Source: Cyanophora paradoxa CCMP329 (taxonomy: Eukaryota; Plantae; Glaucophyta). From it: a DNA stretch of 64,000 bases. The notes below the pieces were generated by a model. The model was not told the DNA's origin. It saw only the letters and a list, made by a program, of their open reading frames with translations, and did not search any database. A program made the translations under genes and the position numbers. Shown piece after piece: positions 2,787 to 64,000 of the stretch. The stretch lies in assembly GCA_004431415.1 (NCBI GenBank), contig QPMI01000496.1, forward strand, positions 124,001-188,000. Reading direction: 5' to 3'. Position 1 is the first letter of the stretch. Each line of letters begins with the position of its first letter.

Positions 2787-3039
2787 ATTCAGCGTTCTTC
2801 TCGTGCCTGCGACCGCGCCGGTCAGTGAGACGAGGCGGCGCGCTGTTTGCTCAACGAAGGGAGCGCCGGGGGCGCTAGATGCGGCAGGGTTTAAGCCGCA
2901 TACCTGCCGGCCCTCGTTCGGAACCGGTGGCGCGCGGGGATCGGAAACGGACGGGTTGGCGACGTTCAAGCCACGTACCCGGCAGTCTTCTGATTCACCA
3001 CTGTTTGCTTGAACTTTAGCCTCCTAGCAGACGCACAAG

Positions 3040-4896
3040 ATGGCCAACAGCATGGATCCCGAGTGCCTGCCGAAGTCGTCGCGTATGGTGCGAAGCCCCA
3101 GCTCGGCTCGCTAGCGATAACGGCGCCAAGTGCCGGCTGCCCGTCTTGACCGTTGTCTGCGGTGGTACGCACGTACTAAGCGGTAACCGGGTTCGCAGAC
3201 GCTCATTATCGCTGTGCGTTCTCGTTTGGGCCTCCCGCGGCCGTCGGCCTCGGGTAGCCAATCCGCGCCTGAACTGACTTCCGTATCGCATCCTCGCTGA
3301 TGAATAGAACATTCTCAACATCATCGGGTACGTCTGCACGGCCAGCTATTGACCAGCTGCCCCGTGTCCGTCGCGGCTGCTGCTGACTCCTGTTGCGTCC
3401 GCAGCGGCATCGTCATCATCGCCGGCGGGGTGCGTACTCGAAAATGCAGTTCGAAACAGCGACCCCTGAGCGGCCCCAAACCCCCGCAGATCTGGCTCAA
3501 GACCGGCGCGGCCGGAGCGACCAACTCGTTCGTGCAGACCACCGCCACCGCCGGCTCCATTCGTGCGCTACTTCAGCCCGTTCGCTCCTATTTTATCTTA
3601 CGGATCGCTTCGGCTCGGCAGCCATCGTCGTCATCGTCGCCGGCGCCATCCTCCTCCTGACCGGCATCATCGGCTTCGCCGGTGCTTTTCCCAACTCGCT
3701 CCCGCTCGCGTCCCGTACCGCTCGTCTGCTTACTCGGCCGGGTTGGCCTGCATGCAGCCGCCAAGTATGAGAAGTACGTGCCCGCTCAAGAATGAGATCA
3801 ATTCTTCCATTGTTTCGAACCCGGCAGCGCAGCAAGTTCCTGCTCGGCTGCTTCGGCACCATCCTCTTTGTCGTACGCCGCCCTCATCCTTTGCACCCCT
3901 CGGCGGATCTGGGCGCTGACGCCGCCCTCGCCCTCCCCGCCCCTCGACCTCCGCCCCCTAGACCCTCGGTGCGTCTTCGTCGAATCCCTCTCCTCCCCGC
4001 CTGCGCTGAGCTCAACGTACCCCTCCCTCGCCCTCCCAGTCATCGTCCTCGTCGTCGGCGTGTACGCCCTCATCATCGGCAACTCGATCGACAAGCCCGA
4101 GGTTCGAATCCGCAGCGTTCCCCCTTTCCTGAAGCTGAAGCCGGCGCGCGCTTTCTCTCTCTCTCTCTCTCTCCAGTTCGGGAGTGCGCTCGACAAGAAG
4201 ATTCAGAGCCAGATGGCCACCAACCCCGACGTGCGTACCCCTCCCACCCGCTCGGGCCGGCTCCGAGCGCTTACGCGTTCCCCTCGCAGGGCGTCTGCCT
4301 CGCGTGCGTTCGAATCCGGAGCGCGCTCGAGGCTACCTTACCTCTCGGCTGAGCCGCGTACCCCCCGCAGCTACCAGCTCCTCCAGTGCTCCGGCGGCTC
4401 CCAGTCCTGCTTCGAGGTACCCCCTCTTCCCGGGGTACACGCGCTTCCCCCGTCAGGCGTCTGATTTTGTGCCGCCAGTTCGGCTTCGCGGCGAACATGT
4501 GCCCGGCCAACTGCCCGGCCGCCACGGACCCCTGGGCCACCGTCCGCCCCCGTACCCCCCCCCCGTCCCACCCTGTACCCCGTCTGATCCCCCCCCCCGC
4601 ACCGCCTCAGGTCTCCTGCCAGTCCCGCGTGCGTCTGCTGTACCCCAAACCCGTCTCCTCCCCCCTCTTTTCTCACATGTACCCCCCAGATCTCGGGCCC
4701 TATCCGCTCCTGGTTCCTGGCCATCGGCATCGTCTGCATCGTGTGGGCCCTCGTGCGACCGCACCCCGCTGTCCCCGGGTACCCTGATTGTAACTCCGCA
4801 CTTCGTTCGCAGGTCCTGGTTTCGGGCCTGGTCATGGTCTGCTGCGTCTGCGCGCGCAAGAAGACCGCCAGCGGCCCCTACACCACCACCGTCTAA
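3040..4896 (+). CDS. Tetraspanin-like four-TM protein built from many micro-exons
   Basis: Exons 3040-3087, 3199-3213, 3308-3327, 3405-3429 etc. join in frame to RMTLIIANILNIIGGIVIIAGGIWLK (TM1), IVVIVAGAILLLTGIIGF (TM2), KFLLGCFGTILF (TM3), a Cys-rich loop, then FLAIGIVCI..VLVSGLVMVCCVCARKK..YTTTV*. Confidence 0.8.
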
Positions 4897-43521: not shown

Positions 43522-45135
43522 ATGGTGCAGAAGGTTTCGTTCGACGTGAGCATCGGCGGTGCGGACGCGGGGAAGATCGTCATCGAGGTGCGCATGCGCT
43601 CTGCCACGGTCAGGACCCGCGCGCTGGTTTTCGTAACTGACTTCTTCTCCCCCACAGCTCCGGGACGATGTCGGTGTGCTCTTTAGAAACGCTTATTGAG
43701 CTCTACATCGCTCACTCTCCTCCCGCCCAGCACCGAAGACCGTCCAAAACTTCGTTTCCCTGTGCGTTCTGCAGTCCGACCGCCCCGACCCCGTTGGTTT
43801 GGAATAGCAGGCGCTTTTCCCTATCTTTAGCGCGGCATAGGCTCTTCTAGCGCAGGTGCTGGTCAAATTTGATTTCAGTCGGACTAGCCGCCGCCCCGAA
43901 CATGAGCCCACGCGATGCGAGCCGCTGTTCTGAACTGCACTGCAGTTGCACCGGAGACCACGGCTTCGGCTACGAGGGCAGGTGCCTTTGCCGGCCGCGG
44001 CGTGCTGTGAACTACTTAGCTTGCGGGCTGACAGCTGGGCGCCGCAGCATCTTCCACCGCGTTATCGACGGCTTCAGTGCGCAGTGCTGTTTACAGCGCA
44101 CCCTTCTGCACCGCTCACGCTCGACAGTGATCCAGGGCGGTGACTTCACCAACTTCAACGGCACCGTGCGCCTCCCCGGCCTCTGCGGCCACTCTCCTGC
44201 GCCTTTCGGATGCCGTCGCCTCACGCGCTGCGCGCTCCGCAGGGCGGCAAGTCTATCTTCGGTGAAAAATTCGAGGACGAGTCGTTCGCGCTGCGGCACA
44301 CGAGCGCGGGTACCCTTTCGATGGCCAACGCCGGCCCCGACACGAACGGGAGCCAGTTCTTCGTGCGCCGCCCCCGCTTCTTCCTCGTCCGCACTGAAGC
44401 CGTCGATTCGCCGGCCGGCAGATCACTCTCGCCCCGACCCCCTGGCTCGACGGCAAGGCACGCCTGCCCGTTCCCCTCCCCGCCGCCTCAGGGCCCTAAT
44501 TCTCCACCGCCCGTCGCACCCCGCAGCACGTTGTCTTCGGCAAGGTCGTCGAGGCGAGTGTACCCAGCCGGCGGCGGCTTCCCTCCACCCCGCCCTAACC
44601 GGGCCTCCCGGCCCACAGGGCCTGGACCTCGTCGAGCGGATCGGCAAGCTCGAGACGAGCCGCGGCGACCGCCCGCTGCAGGAGGCGTGCCGCTCGCCCC
44701 CTGGGACGGGCCGGCGCTGCTCACGCCCCGTCGGCCGCGCGCGCAGGTCAAGATCGAGCACTGCTCGAAGCTCTCGCTGCTGGACGACGAGACCGCGACC
44801 GTCGACCAGGCCGAGCTCGTGCGAGGCCGCCCGCCCGCCCTCTCGCCCCCCGAGGCCGCCGCCCGCCCACGCGCCGCGCCGCGCCGCGCCGCCCCGCAGG
44901 ACGCCCTCGTGGCGTACACGTCCGGCGAGGAGCATGGCCTGAGCGGCGCCGAGGGCTCCCCTGCTGCCGACGGCGAGGCCGCCGCCGCCGCCGACTGGGA
45001 CGCCCACGAGGCGAGCCCCGCGCCACCCCGCCCCGCGCGCTCGCTCGGCCGCTGACACGGCCCCGCGCCCCGCCGCAGGCCCTCGCCGCCGAGGCGGCGC
45101 AGGCGGCCGACGACGAGCTCCTTCTCGACATGTAG
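43522..45135 (+). CDS. Cyclophilin-type peptidyl-prolyl isomerase with acidic C-terminal extension
   Basis: [75 protein letters not shown]; 12 introns; stop TAG 45133-45135. Confidence 0.97.
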
Positions 45136-45603
45136 ACGCCCAGGCCCGGCCCGCTAGGCCAGCCCGCCCGCCCCGAGCAGTCGCTAGATCTACCCCAGTG
45201 AGTGGAGGGCGCCTCGATGGCGGGCTGGCGCCGTGCCGGCGACTGGACATAACACTGGTAGTAGTACTGTGCTTCTTGCTGCTGCGTGCGACGTGCACGA
45301 TGCTTATATATGGCGCTGAAAAGAATGAAGTGCTCATGAAGATCTGGAATTCACATGCCGCCAGTGCGATTGGATAATGCATATGCGGGAAGGAATGTTC
45401 ATATGCATGAAGCCCGCAGTGCGCTTCGTGCATGCCAGTGTGTTAACCGACCCCTAGAAGGTCCAAGGCCCATTAGACAAACCGCCGCCCCGAAGTTTTT
45501 GAGAGATCCGGATCTGTACACTTAAATTGCCCAAATAACATCTGCTGCTGATTCGAGGGCTGCGAGCCAGCGGCGACAAGACTAGGCTAGGATGCGCGCG
45601 CGC

Positions 45604-48554
45604 CTACGCGGCGACAACCTCGGCGGCGGCCTGCGCCTCGACGGCGACGACGGCCTCCTCCGCGGAGGACGCGTCGAGCTCGTCGGCCGAGAACTCGCCC
45701 TCCGAGCCGAACGCCTCGTCGATCTCCTGAGTCTCGGCCTCCAGGCGCGCGTTGGCGGAGACAACGCCCGGCTTGGTCGACTTGCCGCAGTTAACGTACT
45801 CGCTGAGGTCGATCGCGCCGTCGCCATCACCGCTGGCGTAGATCGCCTTGCCGTCGACGGTCTGCTCGATGGTGCCTGCGGGGGAGGGGGTCAGACCCGG
45901 CTACAAAGGTCTTCCCACCGCGCGCGCTCACCGTCGTACAGGCCGACGATCTGGAGCGCGCTCGCCGCGTCGAAGCCGAGGCTCTCAACCATGGCCGGGG
46001 TGATCTCGCCCGAGCCGCTCTCGTCGAGCCAGCCGAGGACCTGGCCCTGGTGGTTGGGCGACGCGTTGCCCTTGTAGTTGTAAGTGTCGTCGAGCGACTT
46101 CTGGAACATGAACTTGAGGGCAGCCCTGGCAAAGGGTGTGAGGGGCGGGCGCGGGCGCGGTCGACCGGGCACGGGGGGCGCACTTGAAGTCGCCGTCCGC
46201 GATGTACTGCTTGTAGGTCGGGTCGTTCATGTACAGCACGCACTTGGTCCTGGTCGGCGCGGTCGAGGCGTCCTCAGTCTCCTCCTCCTCCTCGACGTTG
46301 GTCTCGTCGTCGAAGCCCTTGCCGTCGCAAGCGCCGGTGGCGGACGGGCAGTGGTTGTCGTTGTCGAACAGATGGCACGAGCTGTCGTAGCAGTGCTCCT
46401 TGCCGATCGCGACCTTGCCAGCGAGCTCCGCCTCCTTCTCCGGGCAGCCGAGGTCGACGTCGATCTTCATGATCGGGCACTTGTTCAGGGTGGTCTTGAA
46501 GCAGGCGTCGCTGCAGCGCGGGTCAGCACTCGGCCCGGGACCAAGCCGCGGTGCGGGCGCAGCTCACCCCTCGACGATCGCGTGCTCGACGTATTTGATG
46601 GGCTTGAAATCCTTGGACTCGCCAGCCTTCTCGTTGCCGTTCATCTTCCAGCTGCTAGTGACAAGCTTCCAGTCACTGGCCTCATGCCAGTCGCCGTCGC
46701 TGTCGAAGGTCTTCTCGCCGTAGTCCTTGGTGCTCGTCTCGGTCCAGGTCGTCCCCTTCTCAGCAGCCTCGCCGACCTGCTTGATGTACGCTGCCCGGGG
46801 CGTGTTTGCCGACGACTACACGATACGGCAAGAGGACCGACGCACTGTTGATCTTGCCGGTCTCCTGGCCCTTCTGGAAGAAGTAGGCCTTCCGGGTGGC
46901 GGTGGCGGCCTTGGTGTACTCGTCCTCCTTGGAGTAGGTGGCGGTCCTGAGGATCGAAGGTAAGAGCCGACGTAGGGCGAGGAGAGAGCGGCGGACTCAC
47001 TCGGTGTAGGTCTTGGTGCCCTTGAACCACTCGGTCTCCTCCCAGTCAGTCGTGACCTTCTCGGTCCACGTGAGCGTGTAGTCTTGCTCGGCGATCACGT
47101 TGACGGCGCAGTGGTCGTCGTGGGTGATGTTGACGACCTTGGCCGGCTTGTCGAACTTGCAGTCGGGGTCGAGCAGGTCGTCGAGGGTGTACTTGCCCTC
47201 GATGGCCTTGAGGAAGCCAGCAGCGAACGAGTCCTCCTCTGCGTTTTCCATCTCTTCCTTGCACTGCAGAGCGGGCGGGGTCAGCACAGACTCAATAAAG
47301 ACGGAGAGACGGGAAACAACGCGCACCATGGTCTTGAGCTGAGTATTGATCTGCTTGTCGTAGTGGATGCCGATCTTGTTGGCGGGGGCCTTGATCTGGA
47401 CATCGGACCAGGTCATCTTGCTCTCCACGATCGTGGTGTCCTCGCAGGTGGCGTCCGACTGCTTAGTGTCCGTCGTCTTCTCATAGGTGGACGGGTTCAC
47501 GGTGGGCTTCGAGCGGCCGGAGTACGTCCAGTCCTCCTCGTCGATGGTAGGCGCGTCGGGGAACACCGGCTTGATGTCCGACGGGTTGACAGTGGTCTCG
47601 GTCACGTCGATGACCGTGCGGTCGTCCAGGTACATCTTGTCGGCGATGACCTGCTGCTGCGTGATAAGCTTGCCTGCGGTTCGTGGACTGTCAGGTTCGC
47701 CGTGTGGACTGTTCGTTCGGGCGAGCGAGGCCAGGCACCCGTCTGGGTGTAGTCGGTGTACTTGTCCTCAGACCAGGTGTTGACGCGCTTCTCATAGTAA
47801 TCGCGGTCGTGGTCGCGCTTGGCCACGGCAGAGTACAGCGCATCACCCTTGTACGTGGCCTCGCCCTCCTCGACGACCTCACCGAGGATGGTGAACGGCT
47901 TCACGTACTCCACCGTCTTCACAAGCGTGCCGCGGTCACCGCCCTCCTCGCACTTGTCGTCAGTGCTGGAGAGGTCGCCATTCGTCGTGCGGGTGAAGGT
48001 CTGCCGCGAAACGAGATCAGCCAGGCAGATGAAGTAAACAAACGCGCGGGGCGGCTAGGTCGAACCAGGTCGAGGTCCTCCTCGAACGTGGCGAGCTCAT
48101 CTGGGGAAGCGCGAAGGGGAAGTCAGAGATTGAGGGCCGCGCACACCGTCATAAACCGCGCACTGCTCTTGGTCGTGTCGGGGTGGGAAACGCCCTGAAG
48201 ACCCGAAGTGTCGTCCTCGGACAGCTTGTTGAAGATAGACGTGTTCTCCTGCAGCTGGCGGTGAGAAGGGCGAGTACCGAGAGAGAAACCGCGCTAACCT
48301 GGATATCCTCGTCCGGCGTGGACGACGAGGTGGTGGTCTTCAGATCCGCATAGTTGTCGCTGACACCGTCCTGAGAGCGGGAGACGGTCAAGGGAAATGA
48401 ACGCGAGGTGAGTAGGCGGGCGTACCAGGTCAGAGTCGTAGTGCGTGGCGTCCTCGTCGAGCAGCACGTTCGGGTTATCCTCCGGCTTCGCGGTCTTATC
48501 GTAATTCTCATCGCCAGGCTTCGGGTACTCGGGATTCCACTCGATTTCCGACAT
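45604..48554 (-). CDS. Orphan acidic Thr/Asp/Glu/Lys-rich protein (about 750-800 aa) with Cys cluster and C-terminal EF-hand-like pair
   Basis: Clean GT-AG exons with strong C/G third-position bias; MSEIEWNPEYPKPGD... start after a 5'UTR intron; loops LDESGSGEIT and GDGDGAIDLSEY; stop at 45604. Confidence 0.8.
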
Positions 48555-49589
48555 GGTTGCTGCGGGCGGCCGGGAGAGAGCGGGCTCAGGCCCTCTCAAA
48601 AGCTAGGCACGACTTCGCGAAGACCTCAGCGCACCTGGCTAGTCGCGGTTGGAAGTGATCCGACCGCAGACGACGAACCGAGGGAGTGAGGAACAAAGGA
48701 GGCAGTTACAAAGACCCTGGCTCCTAGGCTCCTAGTCCAACGGGGTACACAGCCCTAAGACCTGAACTCTGGAGAGGGGGGTAAGCCTTTGTTCACCTAA
48801 GACCCCACCTGCGTCTGTGACCTCCGAATCGCCTCCGATACGTAATATCACGTAATATAACATCGATTCAAAGCTCTGCAGTCGAAATTGTACCGGACCG
48901 TCGAACTCCGATCGCGTGCCGGGTACCGGTATATATATATACGTGGGGCCGGCGCCCGGCGGCCGGCTCATGCTCAGCGGCTATATATATAGCTAGACGC
49001 CCATCGGCCCGTCTGCTCTGGGATCCCGCCGTCATCCCGGACGCCCTTGGCCCGGCCCCCTAGTGGAGCAATTCGAAAGCTTTAAACTGCATGAGGGAGC
49101 TGCAGCTGGGCACCCTCCTCGCGCTCGAGCTCGAACTTAAAAGCTTGCATATGCATGCCAGTGCACAGCTGCCGCAGTGCAGGCCTGAAGCCGCTGAGCA
49201 GCCATTGTGCAAATCCGATGATCTCTAAACAAGGGAACCAGGACAGGTCCATATATATATATACTGCATGCGTGAAAGCGCATAGCTAGCTAAAATTAAA
49301 TAGGCCCTTGCAATTGAGCTAGCGCTCATGATCATATTCATATATATAGATGCTGTATCATGGTATATATCGAGAACCGGGCTCCGTGATACCCTCGGGT
49401 GGCGCTGTTTGGAGGCAAGGTATAAGGGGACAGGGGTAGCAGCATTGGCCCGGAGTCAGGTGGAGCGCCGAACTTTCCCGGAGTCAGGCATGGGGAGCAG
49501 TAATAGTGGTGTGAGATCAAGATATGCGAGCATCGGATATGTGATAAATTGAACTAACTGATAATGCATAGCTAGCTCTATATGGCGCG

Positions 49590-50485
49590 CGCGCGGCGGG
49601 TCCCGCGGCCGCCCGATTGCGAAGCCCTGCGGCCGGCCGGCGAGCGAGCGCGACCTGCGCGCAGTTCGATCAGAGCTCGTCGGCACTAGACGCAGGGCCT
49701 GCCGCCGGCTCACGGCTCACCTGGAACAGAGAGCGAGAACTGGCGCGGCGGGTCCCGCCGCCCGAAGCCCTGCGGCCGGCGAGCGAGCGCGACCTGCGCG
49801 CAGTTCGATCAGAGCTCGTCGGCACTAGACGCAGGGCCTGCCGCCGGCTCAAGGCTCACCTGGAACAGAGAGCGAGAACTGGCGCGGCGGGTCCCGCCGC
49901 CCGAAGCCCTGCGGCCGGCGAGCGAGCGCGACATGCGCGCAGTTCGATCAGAGCTCGTCGGCACTAGACGCAGGGCCTGCCGCCGGCTCACGGCTAACCT
50001 GGAACAGAGAGCGAGAACTGGCGCGGCGGGTCCCGCCGCCCGATTGCGAAGCCCTGCGGCCAGCCGGCGAGCGAGCGCGACATGCGCGCAGTTCGATCAG
50101 AGCTCGTCGGCACTAGACGAAGGGCGTGCCGCCGGCTCCCGGCTCACCTGGAACAGAGAGCGAGAACTGGCGCGGCGGGTCCCGCCGCCCGAAGCCCTGC
50201 GGCCGGCGAGCGAGCGCGACCTGCGAGCAGTTCGATCAGAGCTCTTCGGCACTAGACGGAGGGCGTGCCGCCGGCTCACGGCTGACCTGGAACAGCGAGC
50301 GAGATCTGGCGCCGCGGGCCCCGCCGCCCGAAGCCCTGCGGCCAGCGCGACCGAGCGACCTGCGCGCAGTTCGATCAGAGCTCGTCGGCACTAGACGGAA
50401 GGCGTGCCGCCGGCTCACGGCTCACCTGGAACAGCGAGCGAGAAACTGGTGCCGCGGGTCCCGCCGCCCGAAGCCCTGCGGCCGA
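49590..50485. repeat. Tandem satellite, about 6.3 units of 139/149 bp
   Basis: Anchor CAGTTCGATCAGAGCTC recurs near 49662, 49801, 49940, 50089, 50228, 50367. Confidence 0.95.
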
Positions 50486-51089
50486 AAAGCGAAAGCGCTA
50501 GCGTGCAAAGAGCGAGCTGAAGCGTTCAGAAGCATCACTTCTGCATCTGCTGCAGCCGCTTGAGGGGGGTACGCTTGGCCCTTATTGGCCTTTTTTTGGC
50601 CGCGCAAACGGGCGAGGGCGATCTCAGCTGCTGCCGCTCGTTAAGGGCTGCCGCTCGAGAATGCACTTTGTATAGTGCTCATTGTCATTTTCGGCGCCCA
50701 GGCTGCGCTCCGCGCGCGCCCGGAAGCGAGTGTATGTCGATATGCAATCCCGAGGTCGCTTAGGACGCGTCTTTCAGCGGCGCTGGTCCGGGCTATGAGG
50801 CCCTTAGACTTGGGGCTATCCGGAAACTGGCGTCGTTACGCGGGCGTTGAAGTCGCCGTCTCAGGAAGTTGGGTTCCGTTAGAAAAAAAACCGAGAACCC
50901 AGCGAAAACTAGAAAAAGTTATCGGATCCGAGACTCTGAGACTATTACTATGTATATATGCGGACAAGACTCCCGAGGGGGCCGCCCAGATCGCGGCGGA
51001 CATCGCCGTCAAGTCCCGCAAGCGCGCGATTCAATATGATTGATCATGAGCGCTTCGGCCCCGACGCCGTCAAGAAGCGCAATAGCGGT

Positions 51090-51183
51090 GCCGCCGCCCC
51101 CCCCCGCCGCCGCCGCCGCTGCCGCCCCGCCGCCGCCGCCCCGCCGCCGCCGCCAACGCCGCCACCGCTGCCGCTGCCGCCGC

Positions 51184-51241
<58 letters not shown>

Positions 51242-51270
51242 GCTGCCGCCGCCCCGGCGCCGGCCGCCGC
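51090..51270. repeat. Imperfect (CCG)n microsatellite
   Basis: Directly visible. Confidence 0.9.
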
Positions 51271-51348
51271 CCCGCGCCCGCCCCGGGCCCGGCCCCCGCC
51301 CCCGGCCCCGGGCCGGCCACCATCTCGCTCACCAACAACCAGGCGGCC

Positions 51349-51480
51349 GGCACGGTAGAGCGCCGCACTCTCCACTCTTGTGGTAGAGGCACGGTAGAGC
51401 GCCGCACGCGTCCTTGGTGGAGCGGTAGAGCGCCGCTCTCTCCACTCTTGAGACTCTGGGTTCGAATCCAGGCCGACCGA
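51349..51480 (+). mobile_element. tRNA-derived SINE-like head (Pol III A and B boxes) with duplicated 5' segments
   Basis: A box TGGTGGAGCGG 51415-51425 followed by TAGAGCG; B box GGTTCGAATCC 51459-51469; no complete cloverleaf; GGTAGAGCGCCGC repeated three times. Confidence 0.55.
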
Positions 51481-51622
51481 GACGATCCCGCATCGAATCC
51501 CGGTGTGGTCGGTGGGGGGTTTGATGGTATCCCAACGCTGGGCGGACCCCATAGCCGCACTCACTGGACCCGAAAGGCCGAAGGTGGGGGCGGTCCTGTG
51601 CGTTCCCATAAGAACACGCGCA

Positions 51623-51749
51623 TACCGTAGAACACAATATTAGTCTGTACTTTATTATGTCGTCCCGAAATTATGTCGCCTCGGACGGGACAAAACGACA
51701 TAATTTGGAGACGTCATAATACGGGCTCGCTAAGCCGTTTCATACAGTA
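51623..51749. mobile_element. Fold-back TA-flanked MITE
   Basis: TA-CCGTAG...TATTATGTCGTCCCGAAATTATGTCG mirrored by CGACATAATTTGGAGACGTCATAATA...TACAG-TA. Confidence 0.65.
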
Positions 51750-52517
51750 CCCCCCAATTTTACCGCCCCATACAAGCCTGAAAATTTCATTCCGACATAA
51801 TTTGGGGGCGTCATATTTCGCATAGAGAGGGGGCCCTGTGACAAGCCCACCGCCATCCTCTCTGAGTTAGATAGCTTCATGAAGCAATGCCACCTCCCTA
51901 CCTCGCTTCTGCGTAACGCCTTGCCCACCTACGGGCCCGCCCCACCCCCCTAAGCATTTCCCCGGCCTGGCCACTAGCGCCAGACTAGCTATAGCTCCAC
52001 GGCCTATATCCCCTCCACGCCCCTTTTCTTTCCCACGACCACACCAGGGCGGCCACCCCGCCCATGGCCACAACCGCCCGCCCCCACGGCACCCCCGATA
52101 AAGCCTCTAACCAGGACCACAAACACCCCGCGCCCCACACGCAATAAAAATAAGGGGGCGCGCCTGCTACCCTAGCCCGCGCCGCCCCCACCCCTCCCCC
52201 CCCCCACCCCTCTTCCCCCGCCTGATAAGATTGGCCCCCTCGGCGCCACGACCTCCGCACCTACACTCACGACAACGACCCCCTACCACGCTTCCCCCTA
52301 CAAGAGAAACGCTCAGCTGTACTACAGTGGCGCCCCGGCCGCGGCGCCGGCAGGACGATTCTCGCCCGCCGGCGCCCGCGCCGGTTGCAGCCAGCCTGGC
52401 AGCGCGGCCGGGACCCGGTGACCGTCGGACGCGAGATATACATCATTGAGATGCCATGATGCATTTACAGCCTGGCAGCGTTCTGCATGCTGAACAGAGC
52501 GCTCGCTGTACATGTCC

Positions 52518-53515
52518 TATCAAAACCTTCCAGCACGTTGTATCTGCTTCCCCAGACAGCCGCAGTTTCTCTGTTTTTTGTCTAAGGCGCATCTGCCTCC
52601 GCGCCCTCCAGCAGCTTTGCGCAACTTCTCACGGTCGGTTCGTGTTCTCTGTGCTCTATTTCCCGTCGTCTGGCTGCGCTCTGTGTCCTGCCGGCGTTCG
52701 CGCCCATTCTCCTGGCCGTTGTGCCCGTTCTCTGCCCGTCGCGGCTGTATACTTCATCTTCGATGCAACACGTCTGAAATGCGCCCTCTGACATGCCTAC
52801 GTCACTCCGTCGCCTGGCGCCTTTTCCCGCTAACCGCTTCGTCGGTGTTAGACGTGGCTGCTCATTGATTGCTCTCCTTCAGTGCGCATTGCATTTCTGC
52901 ATCTTTATGTCGTCCGGTAGCCGATTGTATCGCTAACAAGCCGATCTTTCCATCACCGTTGCTAACTGCTGCCTGCGCTTCGGCATAGTATTGTGTGCTT
53001 GCTCCGCATTGCCGCCATCAGAGGCTGTTCTCCTTCCTCGACTCACCTCGCTTGCTCCGCATGCCGCTGTCGGACGCTGCCGCATACCTCCCTCGACTGA
53101 CCTCAGGCACAGGCCCAGGCCCAGTAAGCGTTTTCGTCTTTCTGATCCTAAGTCTAATTTTTCTTCTGTTGGTATGGCCGCTGCTGCTCTTAATGAGTAA
53201 TCCTGAGTGACACTTGAGCTTGTGTCCTTCCTTTGCCCGGGGCAAACCCTGATACCCTCGGGCCGCCCGACAGGGAGCGGGCCGTCACGGGGATTCAGGC
53301 TCTTCCTATGTGGCGCCGTCGGGTGTCCACATAGGTTGGCTTTCCATTCTGCTGGCGCCCTGGGGGTGGTGGCCCAGGGTCCTGTACGTGGCTTCCACTC
53401 ACTCCCCACGCTAGTGGGTCCCTGACGGGCCTTGCACGTCCCATTCGGGGCCTCTGCGGTTTTGTCATACCCAGTCTTGCTGGCGTGGATGTGTCTACTG
53501 CATTTCTCTCTCTCT
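52518..53515 (+). mobile_element. 5'-truncated non-LTR retrotransposon copy
   Basis: Perfect 16-bp TSD CTCGCTGTACATGTCC (52502-52517, 53516-53531), (TC)n tail, degenerate ORF with CALCPAGVRAHSPGRC (CCHC-like), hairpin-rich 3' region. Confidence 0.8.
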
Positions 53516-53951
53516 CTCGCTGTACATGTCCGAGACGGCGCAGCTCAGGCGGGCCACGATTCTCAATAATTATATAATCACGATCTCATTATATATAAAC
53601 TTTTGAAAGATCCGATGATCCGAGCTGCGCATGCAGGACGCTGGCGAGCTACTGGCGCTCTACCAACGGAGCGCTAAATTAAACAAAACAGAGAGAGAAG
53701 GTGGGGTGGAGAGGGCCGCAGCCCGGGAGGGCCCCAGAGGAGGAAAGGATGCAGCCCCGCTAATTATAAAGAGCCACTGACTTGCCGTGCGCGTCAGTTG
53801 GGTCCGGGGAAGGGAAATTAATCATGTGCATGGGTCTGCGGTGCTGTGGCACCTAGGAGGAAGCACCAAGAGCTCTTGGCATTGGCAGTGCGCACAAGAC
53901 TCGCACAAAAGGGGTGGCGGGGCGGCAGCCCCGGGCGGGACTGCCCAGTCA

Positions 53952-55542
53952 CTACATGGCCTTGGTGTTCTTCCCGGCCTTGGTGTTCTTCCCGCCCTTG
54001 GGCTTCCTGATGGACTTGGCGCCCTTGCTCTTGCCCTCGGAGACGCCGGCGCCCAGCAGGCGCATGGCCTTGGTTCCGGGGAGGCGGGCCCTGGCGAGGG
54101 CCAGGAGGCCCGTCATGCCCGTGGCCTTCTTGGGGGCGGTGGCCTTCTTCACGACGGGCGCCTCGGCGGCATCGAGCTCGAGCGCTGCCCCGGGCCCCCT
54201 CCTCGTCCGAGGAGACTTCGATGAGGTCGTCCCTGAGGGCAGAGCGGGTAAGGAGAGGGAGGAGGGGGGGGGAAGGGGGGGGCGGGGGGGCGGGGAAGGA
54301 GACGGAGGGGCGGACCTGGTGGCGGAGCCGTTGTCGGACTCGTCCGAGGAGACAACGACGGACTGCGCCGGTTCGGCGTCTCCCTGCGGGCTGGGATTGA
54401 GGAGCGATGGAGCATCCGGGAGCAAGAAGGAGGGAAGCACTCGTTGTCGTCCGTAGGCAGTTGCGGCGCAGGCGGGGCCGCAATCTGGGCAGGCGGGGCC
54501 GGCTGCGGCGCAGGCGGGGGCAGGACTCGCGGCTGGACTGCAAAGTGGCCGTGCCGTTCCTGCACGGACGGCGGTGGGCACTCGAAAGCGAACAGAAGCG
54601 GGAAAGGGGTAGAAAGTGCCCACCGGAACGCGGCGTAGAGGGCATCCAGCGCCTTGGTCTTCTCGTCCTCGTCCGTGATCACGTACGTCCTAGAGTACTG
54701 CTGGGGGATGAAGTGGACGTGGCCATCTGGGGGGAGAGCTCAGCAAGGGCAGGATGAGGCCGTTCACGGAGACAGCCACGAACCTGCAAGGTCCGCCTCG
54801 AAGCTGGTGCAGACCAGCTGAAGCTTCTCGCCGGGCTTGTAGTCGAGCGGGTAAACGAGGCTGCGTTCGCCAGGGGACTTCTTAAGCTTGTAGGGATGGA
54901 AGGTTGCAGTGCACCTGAGCAGGAGGGGTCAAGATCAGACTAGGAGAGTCGGAGCGACCAGCAGAGGGACGCGCCCATTGGCGGAAGCATCCCGGACGTT
55001 GTGGTACGTGTATCTGTTCGTGTGGATGTACTCGCCCGGCAGGCTCTCGAGGACGACGACCTCCGTGCCTGCGCGGAGGATGAGAGCCAGGGGGACGGCG
55101 CGGCGCCTGCAGAGGGCGCACTGGCAATCCCGCTGAAGGAAGCGCTTCTTCGTCGTCAGGTAGCGCTGAAGGATGCCGATGTGGGCGAAGAGCGCCGCCC
55201 CGGCGGCGTTGCAGAAGATGTAGAGGGAGTCGTCGAACCCATCCTCCCCCTGCCAGGGAGCGCGCTTAACGCGTGGGCGCCGCTGGTCGAGCTGCGGGTT
55301 CCTACAGGGCGACCTACGCTGGCTGCAGGCGCGGGGGCGCGACATCCTGGAACATGACTGTACAGCGCGTTCCTCGTGCAGAAATGCTGGCCGCAGTGCA
55401 GGCACTTGCCGCCGTACTTCTGCCTAGATCCGCCGCAGCCTGGCTGGCTGCAGGGCTTGCTGGCCGGCTCGATATCGACTCCGATAGCAATTTCCGCAGG
55501 GGGCGCTGCACCGCGCGGTCTGCCGGAGCGCGGGAGGGTCAT
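53952..55542 (-). CDS. Hypothetical protein with N-terminal Cys/His zinc finger and Lys-rich C-terminal tail
   Basis: CSQPGC..CLHCGQHFCTRNALYSHVPGC; spliced central exons (DDSLYIFCN.., FHPYKLKK..VYPLDYKPG); tail KKATAPKKAT..GKNTKAGKNTKAM*. Confidence 0.6.
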
Positions 55543-56136
55543 CGATATCGGTCGGCGGACGAGCGCGGGAGATCTATTGGGTACGTCAAAAAGACTTTCG
55601 CAGGGTAAGTTAACGCACTCTCCAATGCGATTGGCTAGCGCACGCGGCGTCCTCCTACACGACCGCGCTCGCGCCCGGCCTCGCTCCCGCTGTACAGAAT
55701 GTCGGGCATAATGCAAGCATTGACCACGAACTGGTCTGGCCCGTATATCTGCTCCCTGTGCCTCGCTGGACCCGTTTTTGTCCCGGGTGTTGGTGCCCGT
55801 TCCTGGATCACCCTTTCGTCGGACGGGACCGGGAGACATGGTTTCGGGATCCCCTTGGGATGCGCTTTCAGGATGTACCGCGCGGCCCGGGTTTTGCGGA
55901 GGTCGGGGAAATGGGATTTGGGGTAGGGTTGGGCCCGAGGGACAGGGACGTCGACAGGGGAAGTGATTTTCCCTTCCCCAATAATTTAGAGTATAGTTTT
56001 TCCACCCACGGGCCCGCCGGGGGGCAGTGTTGTATACGTATTTGTATTTGTAGAAACCCGCACCAGGTCATTCGTTGCTAGTAGGGCTGGGACGTACGAC
56101 GTCGACCTACCCAAACTGCCTTCTAACTAACGCCCT

Positions 56137-56763
56137 GGAGTCCGGGCCGGGAGTCCGTGGTACGCCCTGGGCCTCCCATCGGCTCTGTCGCCACTGGGCC
56201 AGCTGCTGAGACCCGCGCTAGCGGTAGGTCGGGCCTGGGCCCCCCGCACGATCCCTCGATCTCACAAGCAGCGGCGGCGCGACTGATTAAATTGCCCAAA
56301 ACGGCATCAGATCTAGGCTGGGAGGGAGGGGGGGGGGGGGGGGGGGGGGGGGCACGGTTACCAGCGCTAGCGCTATAGCTTGCGCTGTGCGCTATGCTAG
56401 CACTACGCATGCGTTGCCTCAGGCCACCCGGCCCCTCGCCCCGCGCCCGCCCCTGCATGCGCAAGCCGCGCCGCCAGCGCCGGCGCCGCGCGAGCTGCAC
56501 CGCCGCCCGCCGTGCCGGGCGCCTCCGGCGCGGCCCGCCCAGCGTGCATGGCCCGGAGTCCCAGGCTCCCGGGTCCCGGAGTCCGGGCCGGGAGTCCGTG
56601 GTACGCCCCGGGCCTCCGGATCCCATCGGCTCTGTCGCCACTGGGCCAGCTGCTGAGACCCGCGCTAGCGGTAGGTCGGGCCTGGGCCCCCCGCACGATC
56701 CCTCGAGCTCACAAGCAGCGGCGGCGCGTCTGATTAAATTGCCCAAAACGGCATCAGATCTAG
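56137..56763. repeat. Two near-identical direct repeats of about 180 bp (56137-56316, 56578-56763)
   Basis: GGAGTCCGGGCCGGGAGTCCGTGGTACGCCC...AAAACGGCATCAGATCTAG occurs twice, about 260 bp apart. Confidence 0.93.
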
Positions 56764-56963
56764 AAGGCGGTTGTGCTCGGGCGGCCGCACAGCGGCGCCG
56801 CCGAAGGCTAGCGACGCCGAGCCTCGGGCTTAGCTGCAAGCGCAGGCTAAGCCTGCGGCTACGCAGGTGCGGCTTCTATTGCTGCAAGCTTCTCTAGTGA
56901 AAGCTGTGTCCGAATGAGAGGCCAGCGACGAGCCAAGCCCCGGCTGGGCGCACGCACATTGCT

Positions 56964-57357
56964 TCACGCGCCGTAGAATTCGGATACGGCTGCGCCTTCG
57001 ATGGAGACGAACTCTACGCCGTCCTCCTCGCCGCCCGCCTCCAGCTCTTCCACGTGCACAGGGAACGCGACCTCGTCGATCTCCTGTGTGTCGGCGTCAA
57101 GCCGACCGACGTAGTTCGGGCTCTTCTCGTCGAGAAACGTGTTCGGGTTGGTCGCATCTGCACGACTGTGAGAGCGGCATGCGAGCGACGGCAGTAGACC
57201 TGCGGACCGTCGGCTTTGTAATCATCTGCACTTGCAAGATTGTTAGCGATGGCCGCGGCATCCGCGAGCGCCGGCGAACTGCGCTAGTCTGCGCACCGTC
57301 ACCGGGTTGCGGGAAGTTAGAGTCAAACTCCACAACCTCCTCGGGCGGGGCCGCCAT
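56964..57357 (-). CDS. Small acidic protein (about 90 aa), mini-paralog of the 45604-48554 protein
   Basis: Exons 57357-57297, 57225-57208, 57157-56964 with GT-AG introns give MAAPPEEVVEFDSNFPQPGDDDYKADDATNPNTFLDEKSPNYVGRLDADTQEIDEVAFPVHVEELEAGGEEDGVEFVSIEGAAVSEFYGA*. Confidence 0.8.
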
Positions 57358-57579
57358 ATGTACGCTGCTGATGCTGCTGCCTCGCCAAGGCGCCTGTGCG
57401 CTTAGCAAGAGACGCCGGTGGGTTCGGTGCTACTGGGAGGACGCGACTGGGTGGGGGACTGTACCCCCAGACAGAAACCACTCGCATACCCCAGCGGGAA
57501 AGCCCAGTGTTTAGCCCAGTCAGCCCACTGAGCCCAGTTAGCCCACAGAGAAGCGAGTTCCAAAGCGCAACCGGTGGGA

Positions 57580-58469
57580 ATGGTGCTCACAGATGAGCAG
57601 GTGACTCCGCTTCCTTGCTCCCGAGTGCGCGCGGTCTCGCTGACGTCCGCGACCGAGCGAAGGTCGCAGAGCTTCTCAAGCATGGCCCGGGGCCCCAGAC
57701 GGTCATGGGTTCGTGCGCGGGGGCAGGGAGCGGCGACTTCCATCAGTACAGGCAGATGAGGCGGCGAGAGATGGAGCGCGAGAACTTGATGAACAAGCTG
57801 TGGAAAGAGGTGCGCAGCGCCGTGAGGCGCAGCTAGCGCCGCTTGCTTCCGCACGGCGCTGCGGCGCGGTTTTCGGCAGGCCCCCGCCGACGCCCGCCGC
57901 ACAGAAGCAAGATAAGGAGGAATTCGAGGCGAGGAAGGAGAAGCGCACGCGCGAGATCGAAGAGAAAGCGGTCCGCCAGCGCGCCGCAGACGCTTCCCAC
58001 GGCCCGCGCGAATATGAGTGTGCCCCGCCCCGCGAACGCAGAACAAAAAGCGCGAGAAGCGTAAGAAGAAGGAGTCCAAGAAAGGCAAGGGGAAGGGCAA
58101 GGAGGAGGGCAAGAGTGGCGGCGAATCCTCAGGCCCCGGCGAGGCCTCGGTGCGCCCTACCCCTACCCCTTCAGCCAACCTGGCGCTCACGGTGCCCCCA
58201 TCAGGGAGGGGAGGAGGAGATCTCAGACTCGGAGATCGACAAGGTGGGCAGTGCCCGCTCCCCTGCCGCCGCGCACGCCGTGCCTGGTACCCGTTGCCAA
58301 GGGCGGCGGGCCCCAGGTGCTAGCGGAGGTGGGGGTACTGGAGCCATCCTCTTCGGAGAAAGAGGACGGCCAGGCGGACGGGAAGAAGGCGAAGAAGGGT
58401 GCGGAGGGCCCGTCCAAGCAGCCCAAGGCGCAGGAGGAGAAGGGGAAGGGGGCGGACAAGGAGAAGTAG
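57580..58469 (+). CDS. PRKRIP1: PRKR-interacting protein 1 homolog (DUF1168)
   Basis: VMGSCAGAGSGDFHQYRQMRRREMER..EEFEARKE..KKREKRKKK signature. Confidence 0.9.
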
Positions 58470-58789
58470 GGCAGCTGGCGAGATAGTGGTCGCATGTACA
58501 GTAGTCAGGCTTCAAGCTTGAACATCCCTCGATCTCCGTAGATGATCGATCCCCAATCGATCGATTCTTCACTCGATGCTCGCAGCGGGGTGACGTCCCC
58601 GGGCCCGAGGGGGGCTGCTTGCGCTCAGCGGCTGCTCTCAGTGACTGCCCCGCACTCAGCGGCTGCTGAGTGGGCTGTCCGATGATCCGATGATCGGTGG
58701 TGGGGACTCAGTGCACGTGACTGCCCGGGGCGCCGCCTCGCGCGATGCCGCGCGCGCACATGCTCAGTAGTAGATTGTCCCATGTTGCC

Positions 58790-62375: not shown

Positions 62376-64000
62376 ATGGCTGGTTTCCTCAGGCCAGCGC
62401 TCCTGGCGCTGTTGTTCGCGCAGGCTGTCTTTGCCGCGCAGCTTTACACGGGGCTCGTGAACGAGGACGTGTCGCGCGACCTGGACCTGTCGACCCAGGT
62501 TGCGACCGTCGGCGCCAAGGCGACGATCAAGAACACCGGCTCGCAGTCGGTCGATCACTTCTACGTCGCGGTGCGGGCTGCGCTGCACCCGCTTCTCGCG
62601 CACATCAAGGCGGAGGATGCGGCGGGCGCGCCGCTCACGGTGACCAAGGACACGGTGGAGTCGTCTGCTCCCGCGTGCGTAGTGCATCCCTCGTCGAACC
62701 GGCCGCGCGCTAGATGCGCCGGGGCCGCGCCCGAGCTTGAATGTGTCCGCGCACACTGACTTGGTCTCCCTCTTCCGCATATCCCGTGGCGCTCGTCGTC
62801 GTCCTCGCCTCCCTTCACATCCTCCACCCGTCTTCTATCGCACGTTCTCTGCTCGCCGCGAGTAGTGGCACCGTGTTCTACAAGGTCCAGCTCGCGTCGG
62901 CACTCGCCCCCGGCGCGTCGGTCACGACCTGGACTAGCTTCGTCTACACCAACGTCTTTACTGCGTTCCCGGCCGAGATCTCGATGACCGAGACGCAGCT
63001 GATGAAGTACGAGGGCAACTACTACTACTTCAGCCCGTACACCACGCAGAAGCAGAAGACGAAGGTCAAGCTCGCCAGCTCGAACATCCTCTCGAAGAGC
63101 GAGCTCAGCCCGACGTCGGTCTCCGGCGACACCGTCACCTACGGCCCGTACTCGGACGTCGCCGCGTTCTCGTACAGCGCCATGTCGCTGCACTTCGAGC
63201 ACACCCGCCCGTTCGCCGTCGCGACGCTCCTCCAGAAGGACCTGGAGGTGAGCCACTGGGGCAACCTTGCCGTTGAGGAGCACTACCTGCTGCGCCACGC
63301 CGGCGCGGCGCACAAGGGCTACTTCTCCCGCTACGACTATCAGCGCAACCCGATGGGCGCCGGCGTCGCCTCGATCCGCTCCATTGTCTCCGTCCTCCCC
63401 TCCTCCGCCTTCGAGATCTACTACCGCGACGAGGTCTCCGCGCACGCCCGCCGGCCCGCCCTTCCCCGTCCTCACACGCGTTCGCGCGCTCTCTTTCTTT
63501 TCCTTGCCAGATCGGCAACATCTCGACGTCGGCGATCAACCCGTCGGACAAGGGACTCGAGGTCGAGCTCGTGCCGCGCTTCCCGCTCTTCGGCGGCTGG
63601 AAGACGGACTTCCTCTTCGGCTACAACCTCCCGCTCTCCGAGTTCCTGCGCTCGCTCGGGGGCTCCCGCTACGCGCTCTCCTTCCCCTTCGGCTCCTCCG
63701 TCGAGGGCCTCGTCATCGACGAGCTCGCCGTGAAGATCATCCTCCCCGAGGGCGCCACGTGCGTTTCGAGACATTACTCCGGAGTATCGAATTCGACCGG
63801 CGTAATTTGATCCCGCCGCGCCGGGCCCGCGCAGCGACATCAAGTTCGAGGTTCCGTTCGGGATCGACGGCGAGGAGCGGGGCACGCACTTCGCGCACCT
63901 CGACTTCGCCGGGCGCCCGACGCTCACCATCCGCAAGAAGAACGTCGTCGGCGAGCACAACGTCAACTTCAAGGCGAGCCGATCCGTTTCTCCACTCCGC
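62376..64000 (+). CDS. RPN1: Ribophorin I (oligosaccharyltransferase subunit OST1/RPN1), partial
   Basis: Signal peptide MAGFLRPALLALLF; YGPY, EVSHWGNLAVEEHY, FSRYDYQ, IYYRDEIGNISTS, PRFPLFGGWKTDF. Confidence 0.96.

Follow-up and report, generated by a model that had tools for sequence, protein, structure and literature searches.

A modular five-member protein family with acidic C-terminal tails in the glaucophyte Cyanophora paradoxa

Structure of the Maxi and Mini Genes

The window analyzed here is a 64,000-nucleotide (nt) stretch of contig QPMI01000496.1 (positions 124,001 to 188,000 of the forward strand) from the glaucophyte Cyanophora paradoxa CCMP329, and all coordinates below refer to it. 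On its reverse strand lie a large gene, g15182 (maxi; coding sequence 45604..48554, 769 amino acids (aa)), and a small one, g15185 (mini; coding sequence 56964..57357, 90 aa). The mini protein consists of a head, module A, followed by an acidic tail, module D; in the maxi protein, A is followed by a linker, a payload (module B), an EF-hand-like module C, and D. The initial annotation had reported a pair of genes with matching N- and C-terminal motifs, and this likeness proved to be real. Mini residues 9–42 align with maxi residues 4–39 (score 77) and mini residues 45–90 with maxi residues 723–769 (score 68); each score was reached in 0 of 5000 shuffles, and a chance resemblance was rejected.

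The mini gene comprises three exons (57357-57297, 57225-57208, and 57157-56964), the middle one of 18 nt being flanked by two phase-1 introns, 57296-57226 and 57207-57158 (together 57158..57296, reverse strand). The spliced model is identical to the database protein P0001 (g15185.t1), and a search with exon 3 returned a single protein, EukProt tig00020904_g15185.t1. The gene had been considered hidden; it is already an annotated model of the 2019 genome. Both introns and the 18-nt exon, as initially annotated, were confirmed: in X5 and X11, the RNA-type contigs are joined across the two introns exactly at the modelled sites. In a contig of run X7, the first intron is joined and the contig ends in exon-3 letters, which supports both junctions, and the contig of run X15 over this gene is unspliced. 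The run type 'RNA' is an assigned guess, and the splicing observed in the contigs bears out an RNA origin; the contig depth on the mini gene (about 2900–3200 in X5 and X7) was not used for expression ranking. The X11 transcript contig (56723..57461, reverse strand) includes a 3' untranslated region (UTR) intron at 56904-56957, and the 5' UTR contains an in-frame stop and no ATG. Since the mini gene has its own stop and its own spliced 3' UTR, and 8.4 kb of repeats lie between the two genes, the possibility that it represents an alternative 5' portion of maxi was ruled out. Both mini introns occur in the flank context GACG/ATG, and their mutual likeness was matched by 1 of 1000 shuffles and was the best among 91 intron pairs; one is therefore probably a copy of the other, gained by duplication in the mini lineage. 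Their positions have no counterpart in the maxi gene model, in agreement with the initial annotation.

The maxi model contains 12 coding exons separated by GT-AG introns of 50–65 nt, with an open frame of 2310 nt and a G+C content at third codon positions (GC3) of 0.91. It equals the database protein P0002 (g15182.t1) in length, and a side-by-side reading gives an identical sequence. Ten RNA-type runs contain 0.61–0.64 of the sampled words of the gene, the expectation for spliced mRNA being 0.657; the word content of these runs supports the introns indirectly. Two other RNA-type runs with the same species label, X21 and X22, contain almost none of the maxi words, and four further runs contain about 0.35. 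Expression of the gene may be condition-dependent, or these runs may come from another strain. The first coding exon (48426..48554) corresponds exactly to module A (aa 1–43) and ends at a phase-0 intron. Payload B (about aa 100–590, 46260..48100) and module C (about aa 595–710, 45780..46250) have approximate bounds; the latter contains two degenerate EF-hand-like loops (aa 649–660 and 694–705). Tail D occupies aa 723–769 (45604..45747) and has 14 Asp/Glu residues and one Arg. A 5' UTR intron was predicted at 48560..48634 from the sequence; with or without its splicing, the ATG is preceded by an in-frame stop. No internal repeats were found in the maxi protein.

The mini and maxi proteins have the same residue at 23 of 45 aligned codons, 7 of these 23 through different codons. 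Rough estimates of 0.37 for nonsynonymous (dN) and 0.83 for synonymous (dS) divergence give a dN/dS of about 0.44, over a small sample of 45 codons in a GC3-biased genome. No alignment was obtained between the 5' regions of the two genes. Downstream, a 14-nt element, TTTGGGCAATTTAA, lies 69 nt past the maxi stop (45522..45535, reverse strand), and an identical copy occupies the mini 3' UTR (56734..56747, reverse strand), 11 nt before the RNA contig end. An AT-rich 14-mer of this kind was common to random segment pairs in 0.04% of trials. A poly(A) signal, a control element common to the two genes, and a remnant of their descent are possible readings; a literature search for a Cyanophora poly(A) signal or an acidic C-terminal signal found no paper. 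The only further copy in the window (56287-56300) belongs to a local duplicate: a 143-nt direct repeat, 56174-56316 and 56621-56763, surrounds a poly-C stretch, and DNA run X15 skips 447 nt there. The second copy of the mini 3' end is therefore a strain variant or an assembly artefact.

Family Members and Module Layouts

A profile of the mini protein and the two maxi end exons was searched over 1.84 billion representatives and matched only mini, maxi, and the 87-aa protein g14959, whose cluster also contains the 96-aa protein g17762 (P0004). In both relatives, encoded on other contigs and about 40% identical to the mini protein, head A is fused directly to tail D. The C-terminus of g17762 is some 12 residues longer than that of its near-identical sister g14959, and this end may be mis-predicted. 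The A+D junction kept on three contigs indicates that the short form is old and appears to be conserved in three copies. Together with the dN and dS values, this upholds the proposal of the initial annotation that the mini gene is an old, selected paralog; a fresh deletion or a pseudogene was rejected.

The search with the full-length maxi protein revealed one more relative, g21823 (1074 aa), which is 55% identical across maxi residues 101–591, retains 10 of 12 aligned Cys of payload B, and holds two copies of maxi residues 590–710, that is, of module C. No match to module A was found in g21823. All three D queries were placed on its last 58 residues, directly after the second C copy. The layouts are therefore A+D in the three minis, A+B+C+D in maxi, and B+C+linker+C+D in g21823. 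Module A is a head of about 36 aa with the pattern P-x-P-G-D...Y...N-P-N...D...Y, probably a small turn-rich domain; module B is a 490-aa payload rich in Thr, Asp, Glu, and Cys; and module C is helical and carries degenerate loops resembling those of EF hands. All five tails have 42–56 aa and 14–17 Asp/Glu residues and start at their sole basic residue, an Arg after small residues that opens the motif L-[DE]-[AE]-[DE]-[TA]-Q; in the mini protein, D comprises 46 aa (56964..57104, reverse strand) with 14 Asp/Glu. We consider this modular anatomy of the family very probable.

The initial annotation had expected a profile search to recover more genes with the same ends and different middles. Two further A+D minis were recovered; no second A-payload-D gene was found by the profile search, the full-length maxi search, or a second mini-size profile search, and the last of these added no new members. 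The sensitivity of these searches was limited, as the mini protein alone could not retrieve maxi at that library size and the word search detects only proteins of similar length. The models of g14959 and g21823 were taken from protein records; for these two and for g15185, no DNA was on record.

No homologs outside C. paradoxa were found among proteins or in the prokaryote, viral, and metagenome DNA collections, and a horizontal origin from prokaryotes or phage was rejected. NCBIfam and PHROGs gave no match (one unknown phage family at E 0.04 was disregarded), nor did the ESM Atlas features. Pfam searches, exon by exon and at full length, assigned no family, and sequence searches of the PDB found no match; by these searches neither terminal motif is a described domain, and the initial annotation had likewise recognised no family for them. 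Payload B had no Pfam match at E 0.1 and its profile none in the PDB at E 10, and its identity as an aerolysin/ETX-MTX2 beta-pore-forming protein was rejected on these grounds. Fold searches found nothing above background, and the AlphaFold models were poor, with a predicted local distance difference test (pLDDT) score of 35 for B and 47 for C. In the literature, no paper was found that names the contig or deals with these genes; g21823 occurs only in a transcript table with the top hit 'hypothetical protein'.

In the core of D, maxi shares 8 of 10 residues with mini and 4 of 10 with g21823, and the first coding exon of maxi is exactly module A. The simplest history is that maxi would be a chimera, in which a B+C block of the g21823 type was joined into a mini-type gene between A and D. 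Alternatively, the short form may have arisen by deletion from a maxi-like ancestor, with A lost in g21823.

Tail D and the Neighbouring Cyclophilin Gene

Tail-to-tail with the maxi gene lies a cyclophilin gene of 13 exons (43522..45135, forward strand) encoding 234 aa, including a 73-aa acidic extension past the domain. Its identity follows from the Pro_isomerase family (PF00160), one exon alone scoring 33.8 bits against a cut-off of 21.7. Four introns of this gene have GC donors, and the extension ends in an acidic tri-leucine stretch. A D-like core of 11 residues starts at 44777, where the cyclophilin domain ends. Among 105,109 six-frame window positions, this core ranked third, after those of mini and maxi. 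Composition-preserving shuffles of the cyclophilin tail gave p 0.0036 for a match anywhere and 0.0002 for one at the tail start, and the hhalign comparison with D gave P 0.0099, which suggests that the extension is D-like.

Extensions of the D type were seen on bodies with A only, on those with B+C and, in a weak form, on a cyclophilin. The presence of D without A in g21823 and the D-like tail of the cyclophilin point to D as the portable part and to A and D as separable modules. The proposed single A-D module around variable payloads was accordingly not supported: maxi is the only A-payload-D gene that was found.

Leaders and Calcium Motifs

No hydrophobic leader was detected in any member. 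The best hydropathy over nine residues was ≤0.5 (1.1 in the cyclophilin), and the control ribophorin I, with an ordinary signal peptide, reached 2.4 in the same measure; signal peptides were assessed by this hydropathy proxy only. In-frame stops precede the ATG of maxi, mini, and the cyclophilin. The g21823 protein contains Thr/Pro repeats and 16 N-glycosylation sequons; together with the Cys retained in payload B, these are traits expected of luminal proteins. For module C, the EF-hand Pfam scores were 11–13 bits (E 0.06–0.3) against a cut-off of about 25 bits. Maxi loop 694–705 retains D3, D5, G6, I8, D9, and E12, of which D3, D5, D9, and E12 are also present in both g21823 copies. This loop is similar to those of EF-hand proteins (PF00036, PF13202); however, it lacks Asp at position 1, the first of the two loops is degenerate, the score of 13 bits stays below the 25-bit cut-off, and the fold searches, with a model of pLDDT 47, gave no significant match.

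Genomic Surroundings

Divergent from the mini gene lies a spliced gene (about 57486-58470, forward strand) with an RNA-supported intron near 57599-57661, whose RNA contig starts about 25 nt from that of mini. Its product, with a GSCAGAGSGDFH motif, presumably resembles PRKRIP1; one exon was tested and gave no Pfam hit. Several TGGGCT repeats occur at 57490-57545. Between mini and maxi, an orphan gene interrupted by introns, whose product has a Cys/His motif and ends in a Lys-rich stretch, occupies about 53800-55990 on the reverse strand. Adjoining it at 55900-55990 is the end of a very high-copy repeat, with a DNA depth of about 4900 versus 36, and the two probably represent a transposon. Also between the two genes, about six units of 139–149 nt are arrayed in tandem at 49591-50492, followed by a tract of (GCC)n near 51100-51260 and, at 51653-51815, by a small element with inverted repeats. 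The gene at 62376-64000 (forward strand), which served as the control above on account of its normal signal peptide, was recognised by eye as what we take to be ribophorin I (OST1).

Discussion

The distribution of D over different bodies can be explained in several ways. We favour, with a probability of roughly 40%, the explanation that D is a portable tag routing leaderless proteins to a shared compartment. D would be a C-terminal address read post-translationally, perhaps cut off at its single Arg, and it would bring proteins without signal peptides, together with a D-tagged cyclophilin as a folding helper, to one compartment or assembly. The mini protein would then be a tagged micro-cargo or subunit and not a fused pair of termini. 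The destination would most plausibly be oxidising, Ca-rich, and cortical. Cyanophora possesses mucocysts, alveolar cisternae, and semicrystalline plates (PMC6212826), and candidate destinations are accordingly the mucocysts or else the lumen and plates of the alveoli. A broader claim is that short acidic C-terminal tags, D being one class of them, form a signal-peptide-independent address by which folded or folding proteins (structural cargo, micro-peptides, and their foldases) reach a cortical secretory compartment such as the mucocyst or alveolar lumen. This would amount to an undescribed route of protein targeting in an archaeplastid that branched early; the claim is speculative, and we regard it as rather unlikely.

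Several observations count against such a tag. Acidic low-complexity tails are common and can be plainly inherited. The D match of the cyclophilin is a post hoc one, noticed first by eye; it has no Arg, and its score of 22 lies below the 25–39 of the members. The tail match of g21823, weak when taken singly (shuffle p 0.03–0.39), draws its weight from collinearity and from where the tail lies. For g21823, g14959, and g17762, the start was predicted in the database, and an A exon or a leader may have been missed. Between payload B and g21823, the share of Cys retained (10/12) exceeds the background of 56% by only a modest margin. Finally, the localisation, cleavage, and interaction in this mechanism are predictions, and a literature search for proteomic or localisation data found none.

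Several known systems resemble parts of this arrangement. Acidic C-terminal pro-peptides occur in plant thionins and class II defensins, which, like the mini protein, combine a small body with an acidic C-terminal tail and a possible processing site; however, they have a signal peptide and a basic Cys-rich body, whereas the body of mini is Cys-free and acidic. The Grl and trichocyst matrix proteins of ciliates are acidic, processed extrusome cargo encoded by multigene families and are usually called Ca-binding. They carry signal peptides and coiled-coil regions, whereas the proteins described here have neither a leader nor a Pfam match. A C-terminal extension conserved across unrelated proteins encoded in the nucleus, the uTP (UCYN-A transit peptide) of Braarudosphaera bigelowii, was proposed as a post-translational import signal that is probably cleaved, and proteomics revealed an enrichment of its carriers in an endosymbiotic organelle (PMC12176269). 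D would work alike, as a C-terminal signal read post-translationally, but differs in being short and strongly acidic; the comparison concerns the manner of action and claims neither membership nor sequence relation. The epiplastins and articulins of Cyanophora are likewise leaderless candidate structural proteins of the cortex (PMC6212826). Epiplastins are defined by a medial domain of acid-base dyads with about 33% Val plus Ile and near exclusion of Gly, Ala, Ser, and Thr, and VPV occurs in all Cyanophora members (PMC6212826). The assignment of maxi to epiplastins or articulins was rejected: its best 80-aa window has 16% Val plus Ile and 19% Thr, and it contains no VPV.

The best placed of the alternatives, though an unlikely one, builds on the initial annotation: A and D would fold or act together in one bipartite assembly module, with mini as the bare module (a cap, nucleator, or competitor) and maxi as a version in which the payload is looped out, the two co-assembling into a polymer of the cytosol, for instance the epiplast plates. 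The A-D junction kept in three minis, the equal conservation of A and D in maxi despite their separation by 680 aa, and the linkage of mini and maxi in the same orientation with a common 14-nt 3' element are consistent with it, and leaderless starts would suit a cytosolic structure, such plates lying beneath the alveoli (Goodenough et al., PMC6212826). However, g21823 and perhaps the cyclophilin have D but no A, a second gene with A and D around a payload was not found in the searches described above, and the composition departs from the epiplastin definition. Less probable still is that cytosolic orphan proteins, largely disordered, acidic, and perhaps Ca-buffering, were duplicated and exon-shuffled in the ordinary way, in which case the shared ends would reflect descent only and the cyclophilin tail would be a compositional look-alike. 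The restriction of every relative found to one species, the low-confidence structure models, the EF-hand matches under the cut-off, and a dN/dS of about 0.44 on few codons, which amounts to only moderate constraint, all agree with plain descent, but the invariant residues of A and D persist at about 40–50% identity over three lineages, and the cyclophilin match survives composition-preserving shuffles. Improbable, and last in order, is D as a pro-peptide acting within its own molecule, with no role as an address; the acidic tail would confer solubility or inhibition and be cut at the Arg to release the mature A peptide (mini) or the mature payload (maxi). The Arg that marks the tail boundary and follows small residues is invariant in 5/5 members, and mini reads as a 44-aa peptide with a 46-aa acidic tail, but the bodies are already acidic (isoelectric point 4.0–4.3) and offer no basic charge to neutralise, the conserved sequence lies after the Arg, a signal peptide is lacking in contrast to the thionin and defensin precedents, and the tail on the cyclophilin is left unexplained.

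As it stands, the analysis describes a previously undescribed modular family of five members with clear module shuffling and a probable intron duplication, which is of modest interest. The 90-aa mini protein and the tailed cyclophilin make the proposed tag function of D directly testable. Should D prove to be an address tag, it would exemplify targeting through the C-terminus and without a leader in a glaucophyte, with a logic comparable to that of the nitroplast uTP. A literature search for a protein inventory of glaucophyte mucocysts or alveoli found none, and the tag, if true, would provide the first molecular handle on the contents of these compartments.

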